A stretch of DNA of 64,000 nt from Saccostrea cucullata (taxonomy: Eukaryota). The stretch covers positions 186,001-250,000 of the forward strand of contig NW_026926657.1 of assembly GCF_032062105.1 (NCBI RefSeq). The letters are read 5' to 3'. Below, in pieces: positions 15,271-63,998 of the stretch. The translations under genes were made by a program, and so were the position numbers. A model generated the notes under the pieces. That model saw nothing but the letters and a program-made list of their open reading frames with translations. It was not told where the DNA came from and searched no databases. The stretch's first letter is position 1. The number at the start of each line of letters is the position of its first letter.

Positions 15271-15370
15271 TTTGAATTTAGCGCGCAGAAAAATATTTTC
15301 AACCAATGAAAATTGACGTGGTACAAAGTGCTCGTCTACAACGATACCAGTCACGTGACACAACACGGAA
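15271..15370 (+). promoter_or_regulatory. Putative FBXL14 proximal promoter
   Basis: Within 100 bp before ATG 15381: TTTGAA (15271), TTTAGCGCGC (15277), CCAAT (15303), TGACGTGG (15314), palindromic GTCACGTGAC (15350-15359) and CGGAAG (15366). Confidence 0.5.
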
Positions 15371-24267: not shown

Positions 24268-27200
24268 ATGGCATCTGTGTCAGAGGAAGTCTCTCCCTAT
24301 AACAGGTAAAGGTTAAACTGTGTCAGAAGTTACTCCCTATAACAGGTAAAGGTAAACTGTGTCAGAAGTCACTCCCTTTAACAGGTAAGGGGGTAAACTG
24401 TAAAATCTTTGCCTTGAATCCTTCTTTTAACAAAAAATGTCATAATCATTGGTAAAGCCTTTTCACTATTTCAATAAGTAATTTAAATGGGGGAGCAATT
24501 ATTGTGTCAGGAAAATTCAACAGATCAGACTAATTTGTTTTTATGATTTATGCAAGCTTACATTTCAAATTTAAAGCACATTGATACAGTGAATCATAAT
24601 TTGATTTCAATCAGACCAAGAAAAAAAACCTTGAGATATCCAAGAATTGAAATATCCAGGGTAAAAAGTAAGGCGATTGGAACTTCCAAATCACTCCAAA
24701 ATATCCATATGATTCATTATAACTGAATTTTAAATGATTAAGAAATCGAAAATATCTTTTATCATATTCACGTTGTCATGAAATGGCTGTCAGAGTGTCT
24801 TTTTTTGAGCTAAATTTTATTTTTGTAGGACGGGAGTTGTGTATGATGAATTGATGTCCAGTCATTACCACATGTGGAATGAAGCCTTCACAGAGAAACC
24901 AGAGAGGTACACTGGTATTATAGAGAGGTGTAAACACTATGGACTGCTGGACAGGTGTACTAGAGTACAGGTAAATCACACAGGTGTAAACACTATGGAC
25001 TGCTGGACAGGTGTACTAGAGTACAGGTAAATCACACAGGTGTAAACACTATGGACTGCTGGACAGGTGTACTAGAGTACAGGTAAATCACACAGGTGTA
25101 AACACTATGGACTGCTGGACAGGTGTACTAGAGTACAGGTAAATCACACAGGTGTAAACACTATGGACTGCTGGACAGGTGTACTAGAGTACAGGTAAAT
25201 CACACAGGTGTAAACTTTTTATTTTGCTGGACAGGTGTACTAGAGTACAGGTAAATCACATTTTTGTAAACTCTATGGACTGCTGGACAGGTGTACTAGA
25301 GTACAGGTAAATCACACAGGTGTAAACACTATGGACTGCTGGACAGGTGTACTAGAGTACAGGTAAATCACAGGAGTAAACAATCCAACATTTTTTGGAA
25401 TATCACCCATCGGCAATGTTGCTTCACTGAAAGGCGTGGTTTCATGAATCAGTGGGTAATAGTGTTTTTTAACAAATGTTTCTATATATACTGTAAATTC
25501 CTTATTTTTCGCGAGTACTTTTTATCGCGAACTGGGTCTTTCAGGTCAAATCGCAAGAATAATAATTCATGAATGGACGGTTGATCAAGAGAATTTACAT
25601 AGATTTCAGCACCATAAAAATAAAGGCAAGTAATTTTATTTCACGTGTGTTGCTTCTCGCGAAATTACGCGATGATTAATTCCACGCGTATATTTAGGAA
25701 TCTACAGTATATATGAAAGTATATCATATTTTTCCATTATTTTGTGTGACATGACTGTTCCGAAAATCAAATTTTCATCAAAATAATTTATATTTCCTGT
25801 ATGAAAAATTCTAAAACCTGAACTCCTTTTTAAAGACCAGAAAAGCAAACGATGAAGAAATTTTGACTTTACATCATCCAGATCATCTGGAGATCCTGAA
25901 GAAATCAGAATCCATGACCAAAGAAGAAATGGAGACCTTATCTCAGAAATATGACTACCTGTACTTCCACAAGGTATTGTTAAAGTATGCTGCAGAAACT
26001 GTAGCACTCTCCTTGTATTCAGACACATAAACTAGAGATGTACAGATCCAAGCGTTGTAAACTAAAAAAAGAGCTGTCACTTATTTTGTTACTCCCTATG
26101 GGTATTATTTCTAGCATAATATGATTCTACTTTCCAAAAACAGTGTATCCATTAATTAACCATATATTCTAATGCAATTTGTTTTGTAAAACACATTTTG
26201 ATTGGCTAATGCACTGATGTTTGAAGCAGTAAAACAACCATTTACGAGAGTGACAGCTTTTCTTTGTGATGTCATAATAGAGTGACGCAAAAACACAATG
26301 CTCCGTGACATATTTCATATAACAAAATTCACAAAATAAGACGTAAAGATCAAACAAAATGCATAGATTGCATTAGAATGGAAATAACTATCTTCTAGTT
26401 TAGTACTTGCAACCTTTAAATCAGCACTAACGATCACAAATACCAAATTAGAAGATAGCTATTCCCTAATTTTACTCACACTGAAGTAGGATTAAAGGCC
26501 ATGTAACATTATTTGTTTGATTTCATCAATTCTCTCTGTAACTCTTAACAGGACATTTTAAGAAATTCTCGTCTTGCTCTGGGCTCCACACTCAACATTG
26601 TAGATGAAGTTCTAAATGGAAAGGTACGACTTTTGTCTTATTAAATACTTAATACAGTAAAACTCGGTTATAACAAAGTCACTTGGACCTATGAACATAC
26701 TTGCCAACCTCCAGCATGTAAAAATCTGGTCATGACCAGATTTGGAAAGTAAAAAATCTGGTCATAACGCGTAACGACATTCACGACATATTTACCATGA
26801 TTAAATTTTATACATATACTGACACGCAAAAGAAACGCAACACCCTACTTTAGAAAGAAATAATAATGTAAAGTAAAGAATTTTGTATCTTAAAATCATG
26901 AATATCTTCAATTAGGTAAACATTGGTAATTTAACGGTTGAATGATTTCCATACCATAACCGGAAGTCAAGTTTGTGTCTGCTTAACAGAAATCAAAAAT
27001 TGCATGTTTAACAAAACATTTGGCAATATTATGGAGTTTTTAGGGTTTTTTACTGTTCATCATAAGTCATACATGTTAACCTATTGTGATGAAAAATAGG
27101 GAGATTCAGACCTCAAAAGCGGTAGCATTGCGCGCGTGTTGTTTAACGCTTGGATTATCGATATCTTTTATGTAATATACATGTATATTATAAGCCTTAA

Positions 27201-40100: not shown

Positions 40101-43100
40101 TAGTTTTTGGATTGAATACTGTAAAATCACATATTTTTGTGGGGGCAAATTTCTGAGGTTTGGGAATAAAATTATTGATATTTGGGGATTTGACTTCATG
40201 ATTGGAGAAGTGTTGAGTAATTATGCATATTAAATTTTATATTTTATAGTAGTAATGAATATGTTGGTCTCTCAATTCTCCATACCTGGAAAATATTAAT
40301 GAAAATTAAACTCCCACCAAAATTAGTGATTTCACAGTAGCATTGGTCACAGTGATATTTTGATCGCTCTAATTTTGTAGACATAATGTTTGCCTTCAGA
40401 GATGTGTTTTGTTCAGACTAGCTCTATACCTTTCTCTATTTCTATACTGTATAATATATTTGAAATTGAGGAATGAATTTTATTGCAGAGTCGGCATTGT
40501 ATATGACGAGGCAATGTTAAATCACAGAGATCTGGGCTATGGGTAAGGGCAGTAACTCGTAGAGTACTTCATTTTTCTATTTTCAACAAAGGTTTATGAA
40601 TTTTAAGAAAATAAAGAAAAATGATCTATAAAAACAAGTAAATTGGTTGCATTTTATATATAGATGTATTAATAATTCTAAGAAATGAAAGTAAAAATTT
40701 GATGGACATGTATTAGTTGCTATATAGTACTATATACATTAAAAAAAAAATATTTGCAAAAATGAAATTCAGTGAATACTCAGGAATCAAGGAGACCAGT
40801 AGCTTAAGTATGATAAAAACTGTACTTAAAGTTATTCCTCTTTGAAATTGAAAGGACTAAAAAACCTAGTCAGACATTCAAGTACAGATATAAGAGGGAA
40901 AAATCATCACTTTTCTGCAGGGATGACTTAAATCTATACACAGAGATTCTCACTGTAAAATGATTAACTATCAAATTCGTCACTTACGTACATGTTAATA
41001 AACAAACCTGTTTCCATTACAGAGGTTTTGAGGAGGGCCCTGAAAGAGTGGAGAGAATTGTTCAGACACTGAAAAAGAATGGGGTCTGGGACAGGTGCTA
41101 CCACATACAGGTAGGGACAGGTGCTACCACATACAGGTAGGGACAGGTGTTACCACATACAGGTAGGGACAGGTGTTACCACATACAGGTAGGGACAGGT
41201 GCTACCACATACAGGTAGGGACAGGTGTTACCACATACAGGTAGGGACAGGTGCTACCACATACAGGTAGGGACAGGTGTTACCACATACAGGAAGGGAC
41301 AGGTGTTACCACATACAGGTAGGGACAGGTGTTACCACATACAGGTAGGGACAGGTGTTACCACATACAGGTAGGGACAGGTGTTACCACATACAGGTAG
41401 GGACAGGTGCTACCACATACAGGTAGGGACAGGTGTTACCACATACAGGAAGGGACAGGTGTTACCACATACAGGAAGGGACAGGTGTTACCACATACAG
41501 GTAGGGACAGGTGTTACCACATACAGGTAGGGACAGGTGTTACCACATACAGGTAGGGACAGGTGCTACCACATACAGGTAGGGACAGGTGCTACCACAT
41601 ACAGGTAGGGACAGGTGCTACCACATACAGGAAGGGACAGGTGTTACCACATACAGGAAGGGACAGGTGTTACCACATACAGGAAGGGACAGGTGTTACC
41701 ACATACAGGTAGGGACAGGTGTTACCACATACAGGTAGGGACAGGTGTTACCACATACAGGTAGGGACAGGTGTTACCACATACAGGTAGGGACAGGTGT
41801 TACCACATACAGGTAGGGACAGGTGCTACCACATACAGGTAGGGACAGGTGCTACCACATACAGGTAGGGACAGGTGTTACCACATACAGGAAGGGACAG
41901 GTGTTACCACATACAGGAAGGGACAGGTGTTACCACATACAGGTAGGGACAGGTGTTACCACATACAGGTAGGGACAGGTGTTACCACATACAGGTAGGG
42001 ACAGGTGTTACCACATACAGGTAGGGACAGGTGTTACCACATACAGGTAGGGACAAGTGTTACCACATACAGGTAGGGACAGGTGTTACCACATACAGGT
42101 AGGGACAGGTGTTACCACATACAGGTAGGGACAGGTGTTACCACATACAGGTAGGGACAGGTGTTACCACATACAGGTAGGGACAGGTGTTACCACATAC
42201 AGGTAGGGACAGGTGTTACCACATACAGGTAGGGACAGGTGTTACCACATACAGGTAGGGACAGGTGTTACCACATACAGGTAGGGACAGGTGTTACCAC
42301 ATACAGGTAGGGACAGGTGTTACCACATACAGGTAGGGACAGGTGTTACCACATACAGGTAGGGACAGGTGTTACCACATACAGGTAGGGACAGGTGCTA
42401 CCACATACAGGTAGGGACAGGTGTTACCACATACAGGTAGGGACAGGTGTTACCACATACAGGTAGGGACAGGTGTTACCACATACAGGTAGGGACAGGT
42501 GCTACCACATACAGGTAGGGACAGGTGTTACCACATACAGGTAGGGACAGGTGTTACCACATACAGGTAGGGACAGGTGCTACCACATACAGGTAGGGAC
42601 AGGTGCTACCACATACAGGTAGGGACAGGTGCTACCACATACAGGTAGGGACAGGTGTTACCTTAATAGGTAGGGACAGGTGTTACCACATACAGGTAGG
42701 GACAGGTGTTACCACATACAGGTAGGGACAGGCGCTACCACATACAGGTAGGGACAGGTGTTACCACATACAGGTAGGGACAGGTGTTACCACATACAGG
42801 TAGGGACAGGTGTTACCACATACAGGTAGGGACAGGTGTTACCACATACAGGTAGGGACAGGTGCTACCACATACAGGTAGGGACAGGTGCTACCACATA
42901 CAGGTAGGGACAGGTGTTACCACATACAGGTAGGGACAGGTGTTACCACATACAGGTAGGGACAGGCGCTACCACATACAGGTAGGGACAGGTGCTACCA
43001 CATACAGGTAGGGACAGGTGCTACCACATACAGGTAGGGACAGGTGTTACCACATACAGGTAGGGACAGGTGCTACCACATACAGGTAGGGACAGGTGTT

Positions 43101-46100
43101 ACCACATACAGGTAGGGACAGGTGCTACCACATACAGGTAGGGACAGGTGCTACCACATACAGGTAGGGACAGGCGCTACCACATACAGGTAGGGACAGG
43201 TGTTACCACATAAGGTAGGGACAGGTGTTACCACATACAGGTAGGGACAGGTGTTACCACATAAGGTAGGAACAGGTATTACCACATAAGGTACGGAGAA
43301 GGTAGGAAGAGGTGCTACCACATACAGGTAGGGAATGTTGATCTTCAGACTGAACATTACAATGTCAGTAATAACAATCATATAAAATTCATGAATTAGG
43401 CCACGTTTTGTGGTTATTTTCATGATACCACTGATAATTCTTGCAAAGCATGGAGGTTAGTCTGAAAGATGCAAAGGAAGTGAACCACTTTGTTGTTAAA
43501 AAATTTGTATACATTTTACTGTAATAATATTTGAGAAAGTACTTTTTCTATTACAATAAAAATTCCAAAACAGGTTATGGGGTTAACTTTGTTCTTCATT
43601 CCAGGGTCGAAAAGCTTCAGATGAAGAAATTTGTCTTGGTCATGGGTATGTATGTCACAATAATAAAGCTTAAAACTTGTATATTGATGTTAAAACAGTG
43701 TACAGATTTATATGATTGTGAAGAAGACATTAAGACTTTGACTGATGTCAGTTAGACATGTCAGTGAGAAGCAAATTTAGAAAAATTGCAGAATATATCC
43801 ATCTATAATCAGTATATTTTACATTGTGATGTGTATATTTTGTAGGGAGGATCATATCCGTCGATTCAAGAAAACCATGACAATGGGAGAAGAGGCATTA
43901 AAGGTCTACCAGGAAACCTTCAAGTCCATCTTCCTATGTCAGGTGAGAGTTTTATCCAAATCTTTACCATACACATGTACATGCAATATTGTTTACTCAA
44001 CCTTGTTTACAGGGATCGACACTAACTTTGTTGTCATACCATAACATTTAAACCATAGTTTTAGCTAGCCATTTCTAATTTCTACTAGCCCTGTTCATGT
44101 ATTGGTTGTCCAGCAGCTGAAGGCCGAGTAGCGACGAGGGGGGTAGGTGCGGGAGGGGGTTTCCCCCTCCTGCTGGTGGGGGTACAGGGGGCCTCCCCCG
44201 GAAAATTTTGAAAATAGAGATGCCAAATCCTGCAATCTGGTTGTATTTTGAGTGAAAATTACCGGTATATGTCACATTGATAATTATTTTTGTTGCTCTG
44301 AGTGAGTATTTGGTAAATTTTTTAGTAGCCCTGCAGGGCAAGTTTAAAGGCATGTTGAGTAGCCCGACCTCAATATTCAGTTGTCCCGGGCCAGCGGGCT
44401 ACCGTTAGTGTCGAACCCTGGTTTACAGTTAAACAATCTGTCTTTGTTTTCAGGAAAGTTTTACCTCAGCAGCCTGGGCAGTGGGCTGTTCTTTATCTGT
44501 GATAGACTCCATATTGTCCAATCAGGTAAGACCTTACTAGATACTACTTTATCTCTGATAGACTCCATATTATCCAATCAGATTGGTTCTTAGATACTTT
44601 CTTATCTTTGATCGACTTATTATTATCCAATCAGCTAAGACCTTAGATACATTGTATTCCTTATTTGTAACACACTCCATATTGTTCAATTAGGTAACGT
44701 CTAAGATGCATATCTTAGGTGTCGTTCCAATGGACTTCATATTTGAACAACTTTGACGAAATATTTCACTAACACAGAAAGCCTTTCTTTCATGCTTATA
44801 GAATTTGAATTGTTAATTTATTGCCCATTGCCCATTAAAGCTGAGTAACCAAAGTAACCAATATTTTTGGATTCAACTGACTCTTCTGATCATACCTGTA
44901 TGTGTCTGTAATACACATATCAACAATTTAACAAAGTTTTAAAATTGTACCTTCATGTTTACAATGTATTTATTATTTCTTAACATGTATTTTATGTATT
45001 TACAGTGTCAGAGTGGTGTTGCTATAGTAAGGTGAGACACAGCAATAATATTATTGTTTTAAAACAAAGAAACAAACAATAAAGCTGCACATAGTTCTCA
45101 TTATTAGTATGATTTTTTTAAATGAAGATGTCACTATGGCATAATTTTAATTAATTTCTGAAAAAAAACATGCATGTCAGAGTATATATAAAAAGTTTTG
45201 ATAGAATATGCTAAAATTAAACTGGGATGTAAACTTTCATATGAAAGGTTCTATAGTCTCTTTGTTACTTGTATGTATTTCTTTACTTCCCCTAGGCCTC
45301 CTGGTCACCATGCTGAGAGAAACACAATGATGGGCTTCTGTCTGTTCAACAATGTAGGAATAGCTGCTAAATATGCCCAACAAAATTACAATGTACAAAG
45401 GTAAAAATACAGGGATAGCTGCTAAATATTCCCAACAAAAATACAACATACAAATGTAAAAACAACGAAACAATGTAGGATCAGCTGCTAAATATGCCCA
45501 ACAAAAGTACAACATACAAAATTAAAAACAACAATATAGGGATAGCTGCAAAATATGTCCCCCCCCCCCCAAAAAAAAATACAACATACAAAGGTAAAAA
45601 CAGCAAAACAAGGGATAGCTGCTAAATATGCCCGACACAAATACAACGTAGAAAAGTAAATCTTAAAAAAGTCTTTTCTGTATGGTTTGTTTTGTGTTAT
45701 ATTTGACTTGACAATATATCTGCATTTCAGGATCCTGATTGTAGACTGGGATATCCATCATGGAAACGCAATTCAGAGCCTCTTTGAAAATGATCCAAGG
45801 TCAGTCAGTCTTAAATTTATGGAACAAAATTCTGTTGTTTAGAAACAAATTGCTACATAAGTAATTACTGCTTTTCTAAGGTCAGGCATTTTATAGCTCA
45901 TAATATTAAAATATTTAGTAATGCTTGTAATGTTTTATTGCAGTGTACTATTTATTTCACTACATCGTTTTGACAATGGATCATATTACCCTTACGGAGG
46001 GAAGGGTTACCACAAACAGACGGGGGGTCCACAGGCCCAGGGACACACAGTCAACATTGCCTGGAATGATGTAAGTGTCCAACTTCTATACTGACCACAT

Positions 46101-48205
46101 ATAATGAATGATGCTTGTTGTAACACTCTGAATTCAAGTTCAGAAAGAAAATCATTCATTTTAAAATACATGTTTATTATTATGCAGTTGGTCAACAAAA
46201 AATAATTTTCATTAGGAGTTAAGTAGAGGATATGTCAATAAGTTTATGTAGATGTACCTGATGTTTTTTGATGAGTACTTACTCTTTGTCAGGGATCAAA
46301 AGGAGATGCAGATTACATCGCAGCCTTCCACCATCTGGTGCTGCCCCTAGCTTATGAGGTTAGTCATCCCCTGGTTTAATGTCACTTTTATGGTTACACA
46401 CATTTTCCCATGATTACTGGGCAGATAGGGCATTTAGAGTAGCTCTGAAAGAGAATTAATCCTTAGGATGATCAGTGTGTGTCCTTCTGAATCTGAGCAG
46501 TGTGTCCTTTTCTTGTTTCAGTTTGCCCCAGACTTGGTGTTGGTGGCAGCAGGTTTTGATGCTGAGAAGTCAGATCCTCTGGTAAGTGACAAATGGAGGC
46601 TGAATTTGTTCCAAAGACAATCAGAAGTAGAATACTTAGAATGTTTATTGATTCCTATGCATTTTTAAGGTGTAAAACAAAATACACTGTATATAAAACT
46701 TATGCTCTGATGCAACGTTTAAAAATATCAATCTACGTTGTACGTAGAATTTGAATTATTAATTATATTTTCTATTTTTAGGGTGGTTACCGACTGTCTC
46801 CAGCCGTGTTTGGTCACATGACCAGGATGTTGATGGGATTGGCTGATGGGAAGATTGCTCTTATTTTAGAGGTGGGTATCAAATGTGTCTACTTTTCTTG
46901 CTTTAATTTGTACATATATTGGACAAAAATTTACATTTACTACCAATAACAGGCACGTATGAAGAGTTAACAAGCTAATGAATTCCCATGCTGCAAATCC
47001 AACTGCTATGCAAATATTTTATTTGCAAATCAAAATCAGTGAAAAAAACCTTCCGTAACAAGTAATTGAAAAGTTTTTTCCCCCATAAATTTAAAGTCTT
47101 TTACTTTTGTTGTATATTCCTGTAAGTATTTCAAAAACTCTATATTGACAGGGAGGTTACAGTTTGGAGGGAACTTCTCAGGCTATGAGTCTGTGTATAG
47201 CCTCATTACTAGGAGACTCCTTACCAAACATTCACAATGCAGTGCCCAGTAAAAGGTAAGGCTATGAAAACATGGGTTAAAGATAGAAAAACCAGAAAGT
47301 GATTTCCTTCAACAAATTAATTCCGATAACAGCTATTTTCAGTGAATGAATTAAAATGATGTGTAAAAAGAAAAGAATTATTCTTATATCAAAATGCATT
47401 TTTGTAGTACATTTTTAAAATTTCTAAACATTTAGATCTTTACTTTTTCTTTTACAGTGGTGTAGAAGCTATTCGTAAAACAATGGAAGTTCAAGAAGAA
47501 TTCTGGAAGACAATTTTATACAGAGGTATGAATAGTCTAGGATGAATTACAAATTGCCTCTCCGAGTAAAACCTGCTATTCTGAAGTATAAAACAAAAGA
47601 AAATATCATCCCAGCTCTCAACCCACCTCTTCTTTCAATTTTAACAAACAACCAATTAATTTTCCAAATAAAAGCAAAGTATATTGAGATCATTAAATCT
47701 AATGTAAAGGTTAACCTGTACTATGTTAATAATGGTCAAACATAATGACCTGCAGTATCTTTAAAAATCACACCATCACTCTAATACATGTAATGATCTT
47801 TCATCTTCACATGTGAAAAATACAAACGCAAATCACTGCAAGTCATTCTGAACTCAATTCAAACCAATAGGATCCATTCATTTTCAATATTTTATTATTT
47901 AAATCCACAGGATGACATTGCAAATTAATTCAACACAGATGAAGTTTTTAAACTATTGCATGAGTGTTTGCCGTGTATAAAGTCAATTCCTGTGTATATG
48001 TCAGTCTTCAAAGCATTAACACAGATAAAAAATTAAGCTCTACTTTCACCATGAAAATCTTTGCCTTAAATTCATGTATTTGAGTAAAATCAAGAAAGAA
48101 ATTTTATTTTTGGTGATGAAATTTTTTATTTCAGTTGATCTTCCAACTCAGCAGCAGCTAGAAGTGATCAAAACTGAGAAAGAAAAGAAGAAAACCAGCA
48201 CATAA
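24268..48205 (+). CDS. HDAC6: Class IIb histone deacetylase (HDAC6/HDAC10-like), 29 coding exons, 818 aa, two deacetylase domains, no ZnF-UBP; HDAC6 vs HDAC10 orthology unresolved
   Basis: Hand-spliced GT-AG exons, all phase-compatible: 24268-24305, 24829-24970, 25836-25973, 26552-26623, 29998-30023, 30453-30557, 30839-30907, 31216-31342, 31454-31519, 32587-32646, 34041-34130, 35663-35769, 36414-36539, 36639-36791, 40489-40542, 41023-41110, 43605-43645, 43846-43942, 44454-44525, 45006-45031, 45296-45400, 45731-45799, 45944-46070, 46293-46358, 46522-46581, 46782-46871, 47152-47255, 47458-47525, 48135-48205 (total 2457 nt, ending TAA). Motifs occur twice: RPPGHHA, DWD(V/I)HHG, SAGYD/AAGFD, LEGGY. 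Confidence 0.92.
24275..24402 (+). repeat. About 40-bp x3 tandem duplication of exon-1 end plus splice donor
   Basis: ctgtgtcag(agg)aagt.actccctataacAG|GTaaagg unit; donors after 24305, 24345 and 24384. Confidence 0.9.
24829..36539 (+). CDS. HDAC deacetylase domain 1 (exons 2-13)
   Basis: [23 protein letters not shown]; [27 protein letters not shown]; [12 protein letters not shown]; VLYFSIH; [21 protein letters not shown]; LVLEGGY. Confidence 0.92.
24926..25375 (+). repeat. 56-bp x8 minisatellite made of exon-2 end plus splice donor
   Basis: Unit aggtgtaaacactatggactgctggacaggtgtactagagtacAG|GTaaatcacac; donors after 24970, 25026, 25082, 25138, 25194, 25250, 25306 and 25362. Confidence 0.97.
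25491..25707. mobile_element. TA-flanked MITE (Tc1/mariner-type)
   Basis: ta|CTGTAAATTCCT ... AGGAATCTACAG|ta. Confidence 0.7.
26696..29297. mobile_element. 2.6-kb non-autonomous TIR element, 6-bp TSD
   Basis: TATGAA|CATACTTGCCAAC ... GTTGGCAACTATG|TATGAA; subterminal AAATCGGG/AAATCTGG repeats. Confidence 0.85.
27068..27948. mobile_element. 0.88-kb non-autonomous TIR element, 7-bp TSD
   Basis: CATAAGT|CATACATGTTAAC ... GTTAACATGTATG|CATAAGT; subterminal AAAAGCGGTAG repeats. Confidence 0.85.
29686..29850. repeat. About 160-bp imperfect palindrome (hairpin end of a fold-back element)
   Basis: atatcatttt..gtttca.tgg.atatgacatgaagtcggt.acatgatca ... tgatcatgtgaccgactttatgtcatactccaatgaaac..aaaatgatat. 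Confidence 0.75.
31763..32546. mobile_element. TA-flanked MITE (Tc1/mariner-type)
   Basis: ta|CTGTAAAAGTGGTTATTTACGC ... GCGTAAATAACCACTTTTACAG|ta, perfect 22-bp TIR. Confidence 0.9.
32763..33848 (+). mobile_element. HINE-like element with six ~160-bp tandem repeats
   Basis: tttatgccccc 5' box, (gtcg/gtct)n microsatellite, monomers starting ~32850, 33011, 33172, 33330, 33490 and 33651, then gggggcataag..hairpin..cttgtt end. Confidence 0.85.
34434..35517. mobile_element. pogo/Tigger-like MITE with nested insertion
   Basis: ta|CAGTAAAACTCG ... TGAGTTTTACTG|ta. Confidence 0.85.
34567..35160. mobile_element. CAGGG-terminated MITE, 5-bp TSD (hAT-like)
   Basis: TTCAA|CAGGGTTTTAAACTAAC ... GTTAATTTCAAACCCTG|TTCAA. 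Confidence 0.85.
35951..36180. mobile_element. Degenerate TA-flanked MITE
   Basis: ta|CTGTGTA..AATTTTTAGC ... GCTAAAATT..TATACAG|ta. Confidence 0.55.
36947..39485 (+). mobile_element. HINE/CvA-like element carrying ~167-bp satellite monomers (Cg170-like)
   Basis: ttttagctcacctgagc 5' box, (gtc/gtt)n microsatellite, tandem aaaatcttcttctcaagaaccactgggcca monomers, caggtgagcgatgtggcccttgggcctcttgtt 3' box. Confidence 0.9.
37375..38580. mobile_element. Tc1/mariner-type MITE nested in satellite monomer
   Basis: ta|CAGTGGCTGGAACGTTATTGTTGACAA ... TTGTCAACAATAACCTTCCAGCCACTG|ta. Confidence 0.9.
40119..40337. mobile_element. TA-flanked MITE
   Basis: ta|CTGTAAAATCAC ... GTGATTTCACAG|ta. Confidence 0.65.
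40489..47525 (+). CDS. HDAC deacetylase domain 2 (exons 15-28)
   Basis: [23 protein letters not shown]; [24 protein letters not shown]; [12 protein letters not shown]; VLFISLH; [22 protein letters not shown]; LILEGGY. Confidence 0.92.
41088..43333 (+). repeat. 26-bp x~86 minisatellite made of exon-16 end plus splice donor
   Basis: Unit gggacaggtg(c/t)taccacatacAG|GTa, about 2.25 kb, degenerating at the 3' end. Confidence 0.98.
44010..44420. mobile_element. CAGGG-terminated MITE, 5-bp TSD (hAT-like)
   Basis: GTTTA|CAGGGATCGACACTAAC ... GTTAGTGTCGAACCCTG|GTTTA; GC-rich internal hairpin. Confidence 0.85.
44492..44705 (+). repeat. Degenerate ~55-bp x4 duplication of exon-19 end plus donor
   Basis: ttatctgtgatagactccatattgtccaatcAG|GTaagacctt recurs with increasing divergence. 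Confidence 0.85.
45348..45660 (+). repeat. Degenerate ~55-70-bp x5 duplication of exon-21 end plus donor
   Basis: gatagctgctaaatatgcccaacaaaa.tacaa..tacaaAG|GTaaaaa recurs five times. Confidence 0.88.
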
Positions 48206-63560: not shown

Positions 63561-63998
63561 TTTTTATGCGCCCGGATCGATAGATCCAGGGCGTATATTG
63601 TTTTTGTCCTGTCTGTCTGTTTGTTTGTTTGTCCCGAACTTTAACATTCACCATAACTTTTGAACCATGAAAGATAGAGACTTCATATTTGGTATGCATA
63701 CTCCACTAATTAAGCTTTTTCAAATAACACAAAGGTCAATGACGTTTTGACCTTGACTGTGGCCTATATGCTAAAAATAGCTTTTTTCCTGCAAACTTTA
63801 ACCTTCGCCATGCCATAACTTTTGAACCATGAAAGATAGAGTCTTCATATTTGGTATGCAAACTCCATTAATCAAGTTCTTTCAAATGACACCAAGGTCA
63901 ATGACCTTGTGACCTTGACTCTGACCTTAATGCTAAAATTAGCTTTTCCCGAACTTTGTTGCTGCCGGGCGCATAGTGTTTCACAAACACATCTTGTT
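63561..63998 (+). mobile_element. HINE-like element with two ~160-bp repeats
   Basis: tttttatgcgccc 5' box, tgtc/tgtt microsatellite, two ccataacttttgaaccatgaaagataga monomers, gggcgcatagtgtttcacaaacacatcttgtt end. Confidence 0.85.

Follow-up and report, generated by a model that had tools for sequence, protein, structure and literature searches.

The window analysed here is a 64-kb stretch of contig NW_026926657.1 of the oyster Saccostrea cucullata, without N. It contains a HDAC6/10-like histone deacetylase (HDAC) gene of 29 coding exons encoding 818 amino acids (24268-48202, + strand), in which five introns open with tandem copies of the preceding exon-intron boundary. The gene was modelled exon by exon with an uninterrupted frame, and the joined model was compared with retrieved proteins. 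It equals the S. cucullata protein 'histone deacetylase 6-like' XP_062610586.1 at 818/818 residues, and an exact spliced alignment of this protein returned the identical 29 coding exons. Only coding exons are numbered below. The Pfam domain PF00850 was matched twice in the 818-residue protein, corresponding to two deacetylase domains, and no zf-UBP finger was found in it with Pfam; a 1161-residue paralogue has one. RefSeq isoforms X2 and X3 of the gene begin at later ATGs (24854, 25914). Donor-like sites 5' of coding exon 1, at ~21655 and ~22923 (+), probably belong to 5' untranslated exons of the gene, and no tandem copies were found downstream of either.

To locate the arrays, a 24-mer across each exon-intron boundary was sought in the adjoining introns of the HDAC gene. 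Junction copies were found downstream of 5 of the 28 donors, those of exons 1, 2, 16, 19 and 21, which are followed by 2, 7, 82-84, 3 and 4 extra copies, respectively, and at none of the 28 acceptors of this gene. For the HDAC gene alone, the difference between donors and acceptors is borderline (Fisher p=0.051). Tandem Repeats Finder agreed, reporting 39 x 2.9, 56 x 8.0, 26 x 85, 53 x 2.9 and 55 x 1.9 for arrays 1, 2, 16, 19 and 21, with 89, 94, 97, 78 and 88% matches. A preliminary description of the locus had listed these five introns and seen no equivalent arrays on the acceptor side, and both observations were reproduced, as were its array sizes (~40, 56, 26 with ~85 units, 53-59 and 55-72 bp).

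Array 1 (24275..24401, +) consists of three units of 39-40 bp, each combining ~28-31 nt of exon 1 with ~12 nt of intron; its true donor lies after 24305 and the copies after 24345 and 24384. In array 2 (24926..25383, +), eight 56-bp units join 45 nt of exon 2 to 11 nt of intron, and the true donor after 24970 is followed by 7 identical pseudo-donors. Array 16 (41088..43334, +) comprises ~85 units of 26 bp (23 nt of exon 16 and 3 nt of intron; 97% matches), with the true donor after 41110 and a 4-bp GGGA overlap at the breakpoints. Array 19 (44487..44700, +) is made of four decayed units of 53-59 bp, and beyond its true donor, after 44525, a weak GT is left in the last copy only. Array 21 (45350..45660, +) has five decayed units of 55-72 bp, with the true donor after 45400. 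The first unit of each array includes 20-45 exon nt and thus spans the real exon-intron boundary, and the unit sizes (26-72 bp) lie in the minisatellite range (10-160 bp).

When the assembly (1.17 Gb, 23,869 contigs) was searched, the units of the five arrays had no match outside a second copy of the HDAC gene, in keeping with the local, non-transposon origin that had been proposed for them. The repeated 5' splice sites of the preliminary description are strong in arrays 1, 2 and 16, where the pseudo-donors score as well as the real donor. The same does not hold for arrays 19 and 21, in which most copies have decayed as donors (GT in 1/3 at exon 19, AG/GT in 1 at exon 21). Array 16 holds runs of variant units and the last units of the arrays are decayed, a pattern consistent with concerted evolution with divergent terminal units. 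The 26-bp unit of array 16 is strongly purine-skewed. It presumably resembles the G-rich core of human hypervariable minisatellites, which may bear on its greatest expansion.

A second gene copy and the orthologous genes

Contig C5089 of the same assembly carries a second copy of the HDAC gene from exon 6 onward, with 665/673 amino acids identical (98.8%). At the DNA level its identity to the window is 79-94% over aligned stretches, and ~79-88% in largely intronic parts (window 40400-46600). These alignments suggest that C5089 is probably a retained haplotype (haplotig); it may alternatively be a recent duplicate, the intronic divergence being very high for alleles. Near-identical contig pairs in the assembly (C13097/C14721, C4803/C10281 and C9535/C3564) also suggest retained haplotigs.

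At the exon-16 donor, C5089 has a single unit where the window has ~85, so that the 2.2-kb array is a presence/absence difference. The sequence preceding array 16 aligns with C5089 through donor +7, and the sequence following it starts at an overlapping position (10388/10412); the GGGA of both array-16 breakpoints is therefore present in the empty site. Arrays 19 and 21 are present in both gene copies, array 19 being colinear in C5089, and array 1 in a related species' DNA contig is shorter by one unit. Copy-number change is thus seen between gene copies; with C5089 taken as a haplotig, haplotypes or individuals differ in array length (~85 units vs 1 at exon 16).

The same 29 coding exons were found in five oysters, namely S. 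cucullata, S. echinata, Ostrea edulis, Crassostrea angulata and C. virginica. Junction copies occur in S. echinata at 5 donors and 1 acceptor, in O. edulis at 8 and 5, in C. angulata at 3 and 1, and in C. virginica at 2 donors and no acceptor. The HDAC6 paralogue of S. echinata bears copies at 4 donors and 2 acceptors of 36. Among other molluscs, Mercenaria and Haliotis, the HDAC gene of which also has 29 exons, each show one donor array in this gene, and Pinctada has two acceptor arrays (108 bp x 19 and 174 bp x 4). The former lies at the exon-2 equivalent, and the deposited Pinctada gene model begins inside its last unit; this start is likely an annotation error caused by the array. The introns of the O. 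edulis orthologue total 54 kb, compared with 16-21 kb in C. virginica and Saccostrea, and contain ~40 arrays, many of which end 6-60 nt before an acceptor or begin 10-60 nt after a donor.

An array follows the exon-2 donor in 5/5 oysters, with units of 56, 99, 53, 60 and 26 bp and differing breakpoints. At the exon-16 donor independent arrays are found, with a 26-bp unit in the window and a 43-bp unit in O. edulis. Array 1 is absent in S. echinata, Ostrea and Crassostrea. S. echinata shares both array 19 (unit 52) and array 21 (~10 x 69), and at the exon-19 donor O. edulis carries a 49-bp array. In all five species the exon-2 copies match their own species' exon best (marginally so in C. virginica), which indicates that, once the species had separated, these arrays arose anew or were re-templated on the working exon. 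The O. edulis copies at exons 16 and 19 likewise match the exon of their own species best; in the older Saccostrea arrays 19 and 21, the copies do not separate S. cucullata from S. echinata.

Array frequency at exon edges and at control sites

Locally derived arrays were counted in six oyster HDAC genes with 176 introns. Twenty-four arrays cross a donor and 7 cross an acceptor (24 vs 7, p=0.003), a further 7 start <=60 nt after a donor, 9 end <=60 nt before an acceptor and 21 are interior. As the interior rate predicts ~1.3 arrays per edge class, the edge classes stand at 5-19 times that rate. Both exon edges are enriched, even where the unit contains no splice site, and the donor-crossing class is the largest.

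True CAG/GT donors bear arrays in 13/43 cases, compared with 5/139 for CAGGTR look-alikes in the same introns (p=5e-6), which shows that being a real exon end matters and that the motif alone is insufficient. Donors of the CAG/GT type are nevertheless favoured (13/43 vs 13/133, p=0.002). CAGGT is not enriched in non-crossing arrays (2/39 vs 1.3 in shuffles). An origin driven by the CAGGT motif was rejected as sufficient, decoy CAGGTR sites seldom bearing arrays. The units at acceptors exceed those at donors in length (median 70 vs 50 bp, Mann-Whitney U test p=0.008), as would be expected from a splicing filter if an acceptor copy were harmless only with its own branch point and pyrimidine tract. 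Microhomology of 4-6 bp was found at breakpoints where it is measurable (GGGA at exon 16, ATCTGT at O. edulis exon 19), and a CTGT microhomology was recognised by eye at exon 1.

As a control within the genome, 172 kb of myosin, dynein and other HDAC loci were examined, with exons predicted ab initio by a predictor that had been trained on sequences including the HDAC gene and recovered 27/29 of that gene's exons exactly. Copies were found at 5/228 donors (2%) and 5/229 acceptors, so that the donor-over-acceptor excess expected in other genes did not appear there. The introns of the control loci are shorter (median 228 vs 533 bp). The array rate thus varies between genes, 14-18% vs 2%, and the ~2% of the control loci marks the HDAC gene as a hot locus, not a typical one, with a bias that is uneven between genes. 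The observed/expected CpG ratio (CpG o/e), taken as a proxy of gene-body methylation in the germline, is no guide to which genes are rich and which poor in arrays. Of the recurrent donor-anchored process that had been postulated, the recurrence and the excess of donors over decoys stand; a strict anchoring to donors does not agree with the acceptor-crossing arrays and the splice-site-free near-exon arrays of the orthologues.

Other repeats and genes

A scan of the whole window revealed few further sustained tandem clusters, the long ones being made of ~160-bp units. Arrays of ~160-166-bp units lie at 32850-33807, 38582-39370, 53389-53700 and 63651-63947. The intronic 161- and 166-bp arrays (32850-33807, 38582-39370) are dispersed repeats in the genome, and the ~160-166-bp arrays are probably transposon-internal satellites unrelated to the donor arrays. 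A transposon-borne internal satellite was also considered for the five donor arrays and rejected, their units not being dispersed, unlike the 161- and 166-bp arrays. Non-autonomous elements with inverted ends are located in HDAC introns at 25440-25720, 26150-26470, 26650-29420, 34420-35520, 37365-38580 and 44040-44420; three of them have high read depth or many genomic matches, and the others were seen by eye.

A single-exon F-box/LRR gene, FBXL14-like by domain reading, is present at 15306-16592 (+), with a CpG o/e of 0.9 vs 0.27 in the HDAC exons. A 7-transmembrane receptor gene is nested antisense in the span of the HDAC6 paralogue in S. echinata (longest intron, 70464-71528, - strand) and in Pecten maximus.

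Splicing, known systems and origin of the arrays

The three RefSeq isoforms of the HDAC gene use first donors only. Read-through of exons 1 and 21 meets a stop at the donor itself; for exon 19 the stop comes 13 nt further on, and for exons 2 and 16 one unit further on. This fits the earlier statement that a stop follows within about two units at exons 1, 2 and 16. Every decoy-donor use tested shifts the frame or introduces a stop. Of the copies, 86-88% retain GT, a frequency close to that of neighbouring bases. This comparison gave no signal of selection for or against the decoy GT, although it is a weak test with anchor positions biased upward. Reads of related organisms were mapped at low depth to region 24150-26700, which is dominated by transposon reads. 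In poly(A) RNA of a related species, exons 1-4 have a depth of ~2-7x and the exon 3-4 junction is present. At this depth, at which minor leakage is possible, RNA coverage is zero over 24322-24751 and 25010-25353, where copies lie, and no decoy junction is among the junctions listed for this RNA.

Tandem arrays of this kind, called mirages, were reportedly first described in amphioxus Adh3 by Canestro et al. (2002, NAR). They are known from amphioxus Adh3, the globins BflGb6 and BflGb9, troponin C and PGBD5, as minisatellite-like tandem duplications across the exon-intron boundary with units of 10-160 bp and cryptic AG/GT signals (PMC3087553, PMC3902484). Mirages occur on donor and acceptor sides, vary in unit number between haplotypes, undergo concerted evolution with divergent terminal units and leave splicing undisturbed, and somatic instability has been reported for the Adh3 mirage (PMC3087553, PMC3902484). 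Their mechanism was called unclear by the amphioxus authors, who proposed a route to intron gain (PMC3087553). The oyster arrays resemble them in the boundary-spanning terminal unit, the local minisatellite unit, the reiterated splice signals, the haplotype length variation and the concerted evolution. They differ in belonging to a bivalve, in occurring five times in one gene, all at donors, and in hitting one donor (exon 2) in five species with different units; the oyster arrays were moreover counted against decoy sites and intron interiors.

Human donor variable number tandem repeats (VNTRs) form a second comparable group, including F7 IVS7 (37 bp), IFI6/6-16 intron 2, CBS IVS13 (31 bp), LMNB2 (100 bp) and PDGFA intron 4 (81 bp) (PMC1557585). 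The first donor only is used in F7, LMNB2 and PDGFA, whereas the two nearest pseudo-sites are also used in 6-16 and CBS; for F7 it was shown experimentally that the most upstream of identical donors is chosen (PMC1557585). As in the oyster, the first monomer crosses the boundary, pseudo-donors follow the real donor and copy number is polymorphic. The human cases, however, are isolated and in single genes, with splice-site use measured, while the oyster arrays are known mainly from sequence. Repeats at exon-intron boundaries have also been reported (PMC2812944), and there is a model of intron gain in which AGGT-containing sequence is duplicated in tandem in the genome (PMC4974935, PMC3443670). 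In the oyster arrays, as in that model, exonic sequence with an AGGT junction is duplicated in tandem, but the arrays lengthen existing introns, whereas in the model an exon-internal duplication produces a new one. No gained intron was seen among the 29 coding exons shared by the five oysters, and intron gain by this route, for which the arrays had been suggested as raw material, has no support at the HDAC locus. A literature search that covered few subscription papers found no bivalve report and no genome-wide count of boundary arrays.

Taken together, the HDAC arrays are real and more than chance, and they are an unusually dense case of an already described structure. What is newly added consists of the arrays of the oyster orthologues (2-8 in each of four other oysters), the recurrence at exon 2 with different units (26-99 bp) and a gene copy without the ~85-copy array. 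We consider it likely that the arrays are minisatellites of the mirage/F7 type, produced by exon-edge-biased mutation and tolerated by splicing. In a first step, 25-100 bp at an exon edge would be duplicated by slippage or repair between short microhomologies, several-fold more commonly near exons than in intron interiors and with some donors favoured (CAG/GT; the D-R-C exon ends of exons 2 and 16). Minisatellite turnover, as the comparison between species shows, then expands or homogenises the array or lets it decay, with copies that generally track their own species' exon. Selection would finally filter the products, as the F7 precedent suggests. Exon-internal, frame-damaging duplications would be removed, and donor-crossing arrays would persist, since splicing uses whichever identical donor lies farthest upstream. 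Acceptor-crossing arrays would survive mostly if the unit carries 3' splice signals, hence their being rarer and longer. The pseudo-donors would then be nearly neutral, any leak leading to frameshifted or stopped transcripts. Candidate causes of the edge bias are lesions coupled to transcription or splicing, or repair that is anchored in conserved exons and slips at divergent intron haplotypes. Oysters and lancelets are highly polymorphic, and the latter cause would fit these two groups. A more specific proposal, which we hold only tentatively, is that oysters, and perhaps lancelets, possess an undescribed germline process duplicating the exon-edge DNA of certain genes, with the same donors hit repeatedly across species. 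Such a process could be coupled to transcription or splicing, or to homologous repair failing where divergent intron haplotypes begin.

Several points weigh against minisatellites born of an exon-edge bias and tolerated by splicing. Orthologous genes such as those counted do not make independent samples, O. edulis contributes 13 of the 16 near-edge arrays, and the control loci, with copies at 2% of donors and as many acceptors, are not above the decoys. Microhomology is readable in few clean arrays only, most last units being decayed, the RNA is shallow and from another species, and the causes named for the bias are candidates that may apply. A different account would be splicing-coupled, donor-specific mutagenesis, in which the duplications are seeded at the 5' splice site of genes transcribed in the germline, by pausing of U1 or the spliceosome or by an R-loop, and selection is minor. 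It would explain why the donor-crossing class is the largest, why true donors are far above motif-matched decoys, and why the exon-2 donor was hit in each of the five oysters, with breakpoints that differ, and the paralogous exon-16 donor on two occasions; the variation between genes would fit a dependence on transcription. Yet the enrichment of non-crossing arrays is the same at either end of the intron (7 vs 9), arrays also occur at acceptors and predominate there in Pinctada, the myosin and dynein loci have no donor excess and CpG o/e does not distinguish the genes concerned, and we regard this account as unlikely. The opposite view, that there is no mutational bias and that the HDAC gene is a chance cluster of arrays that are uniform or CAGGT-driven, appears very improbable. 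Although it agrees with the low rate of the other loci at both junction types and with the preference for CAG/GT donors, selection can reduce a rate relative to the neutral one but not raise it, and the edge classes exceed the interior several-fold; CAGGT, besides, is neither enriched in non-crossing arrays nor often accompanied by arrays at decoy sites.

A functional role, in which decoy-donor VNTRs tune HDAC output through unproductive splicing and nonsense-mediated decay or through U1 binding, had been put forward in the preliminary description; this idea, like that of intron gain, was already proposed for amphioxus mirages (PMC3087553). The strong pseudo-donors of arrays 1, 2 and 16, the damaging outcome of each tested use, the persistence of an array at exon 2 in five oysters and the use of the nearest pseudo-donors in human IFI6 (6-16) and CBS (PMC1557585) speak for it. 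We nevertheless judge it improbable. The units change freely in sequence, length and position, the second gene copy lacks the largest array, GT is retained no better than the background, and most donors of arrays 19 and 21 are gone. In the RNA of the related species, shallow as it is, depth over the copies is zero and the junctions listed include none from a decoy; in amphioxus, mirages left splicing undisturbed (PMC3087553, PMC3902484). Nothing indicates that the arrays regulate the HDAC gene. An assembly artefact, finally, can hardly be credited. The copy number of the 2.2-kb array 16 is given as assembled, but orthologous arrays are found in the independent S. echinata assembly (exons 2, 19 and 21) and in C5089 (exons 19 and 21), array 1 differs by one unit in the related-species contig, and the units bear patterned variants.

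The empty and filled versions of the exon-16 site show the breakpoint of an array, and recurrence at one orthologous donor in five oysters bears on how such arrays originate. The counts speak for a bias of duplication towards both exon edges, and the excess at donors may come from a splicing filter. Boundary arrays can mislead gene annotation, as in the Pinctada model that starts inside one, and they are ready-made polymorphic markers. If oysters do possess a germline process that duplicates exon-edge DNA, their genomes would constitute a large natural dataset on splice-site choice among identical copies and on the birth of minisatellites.

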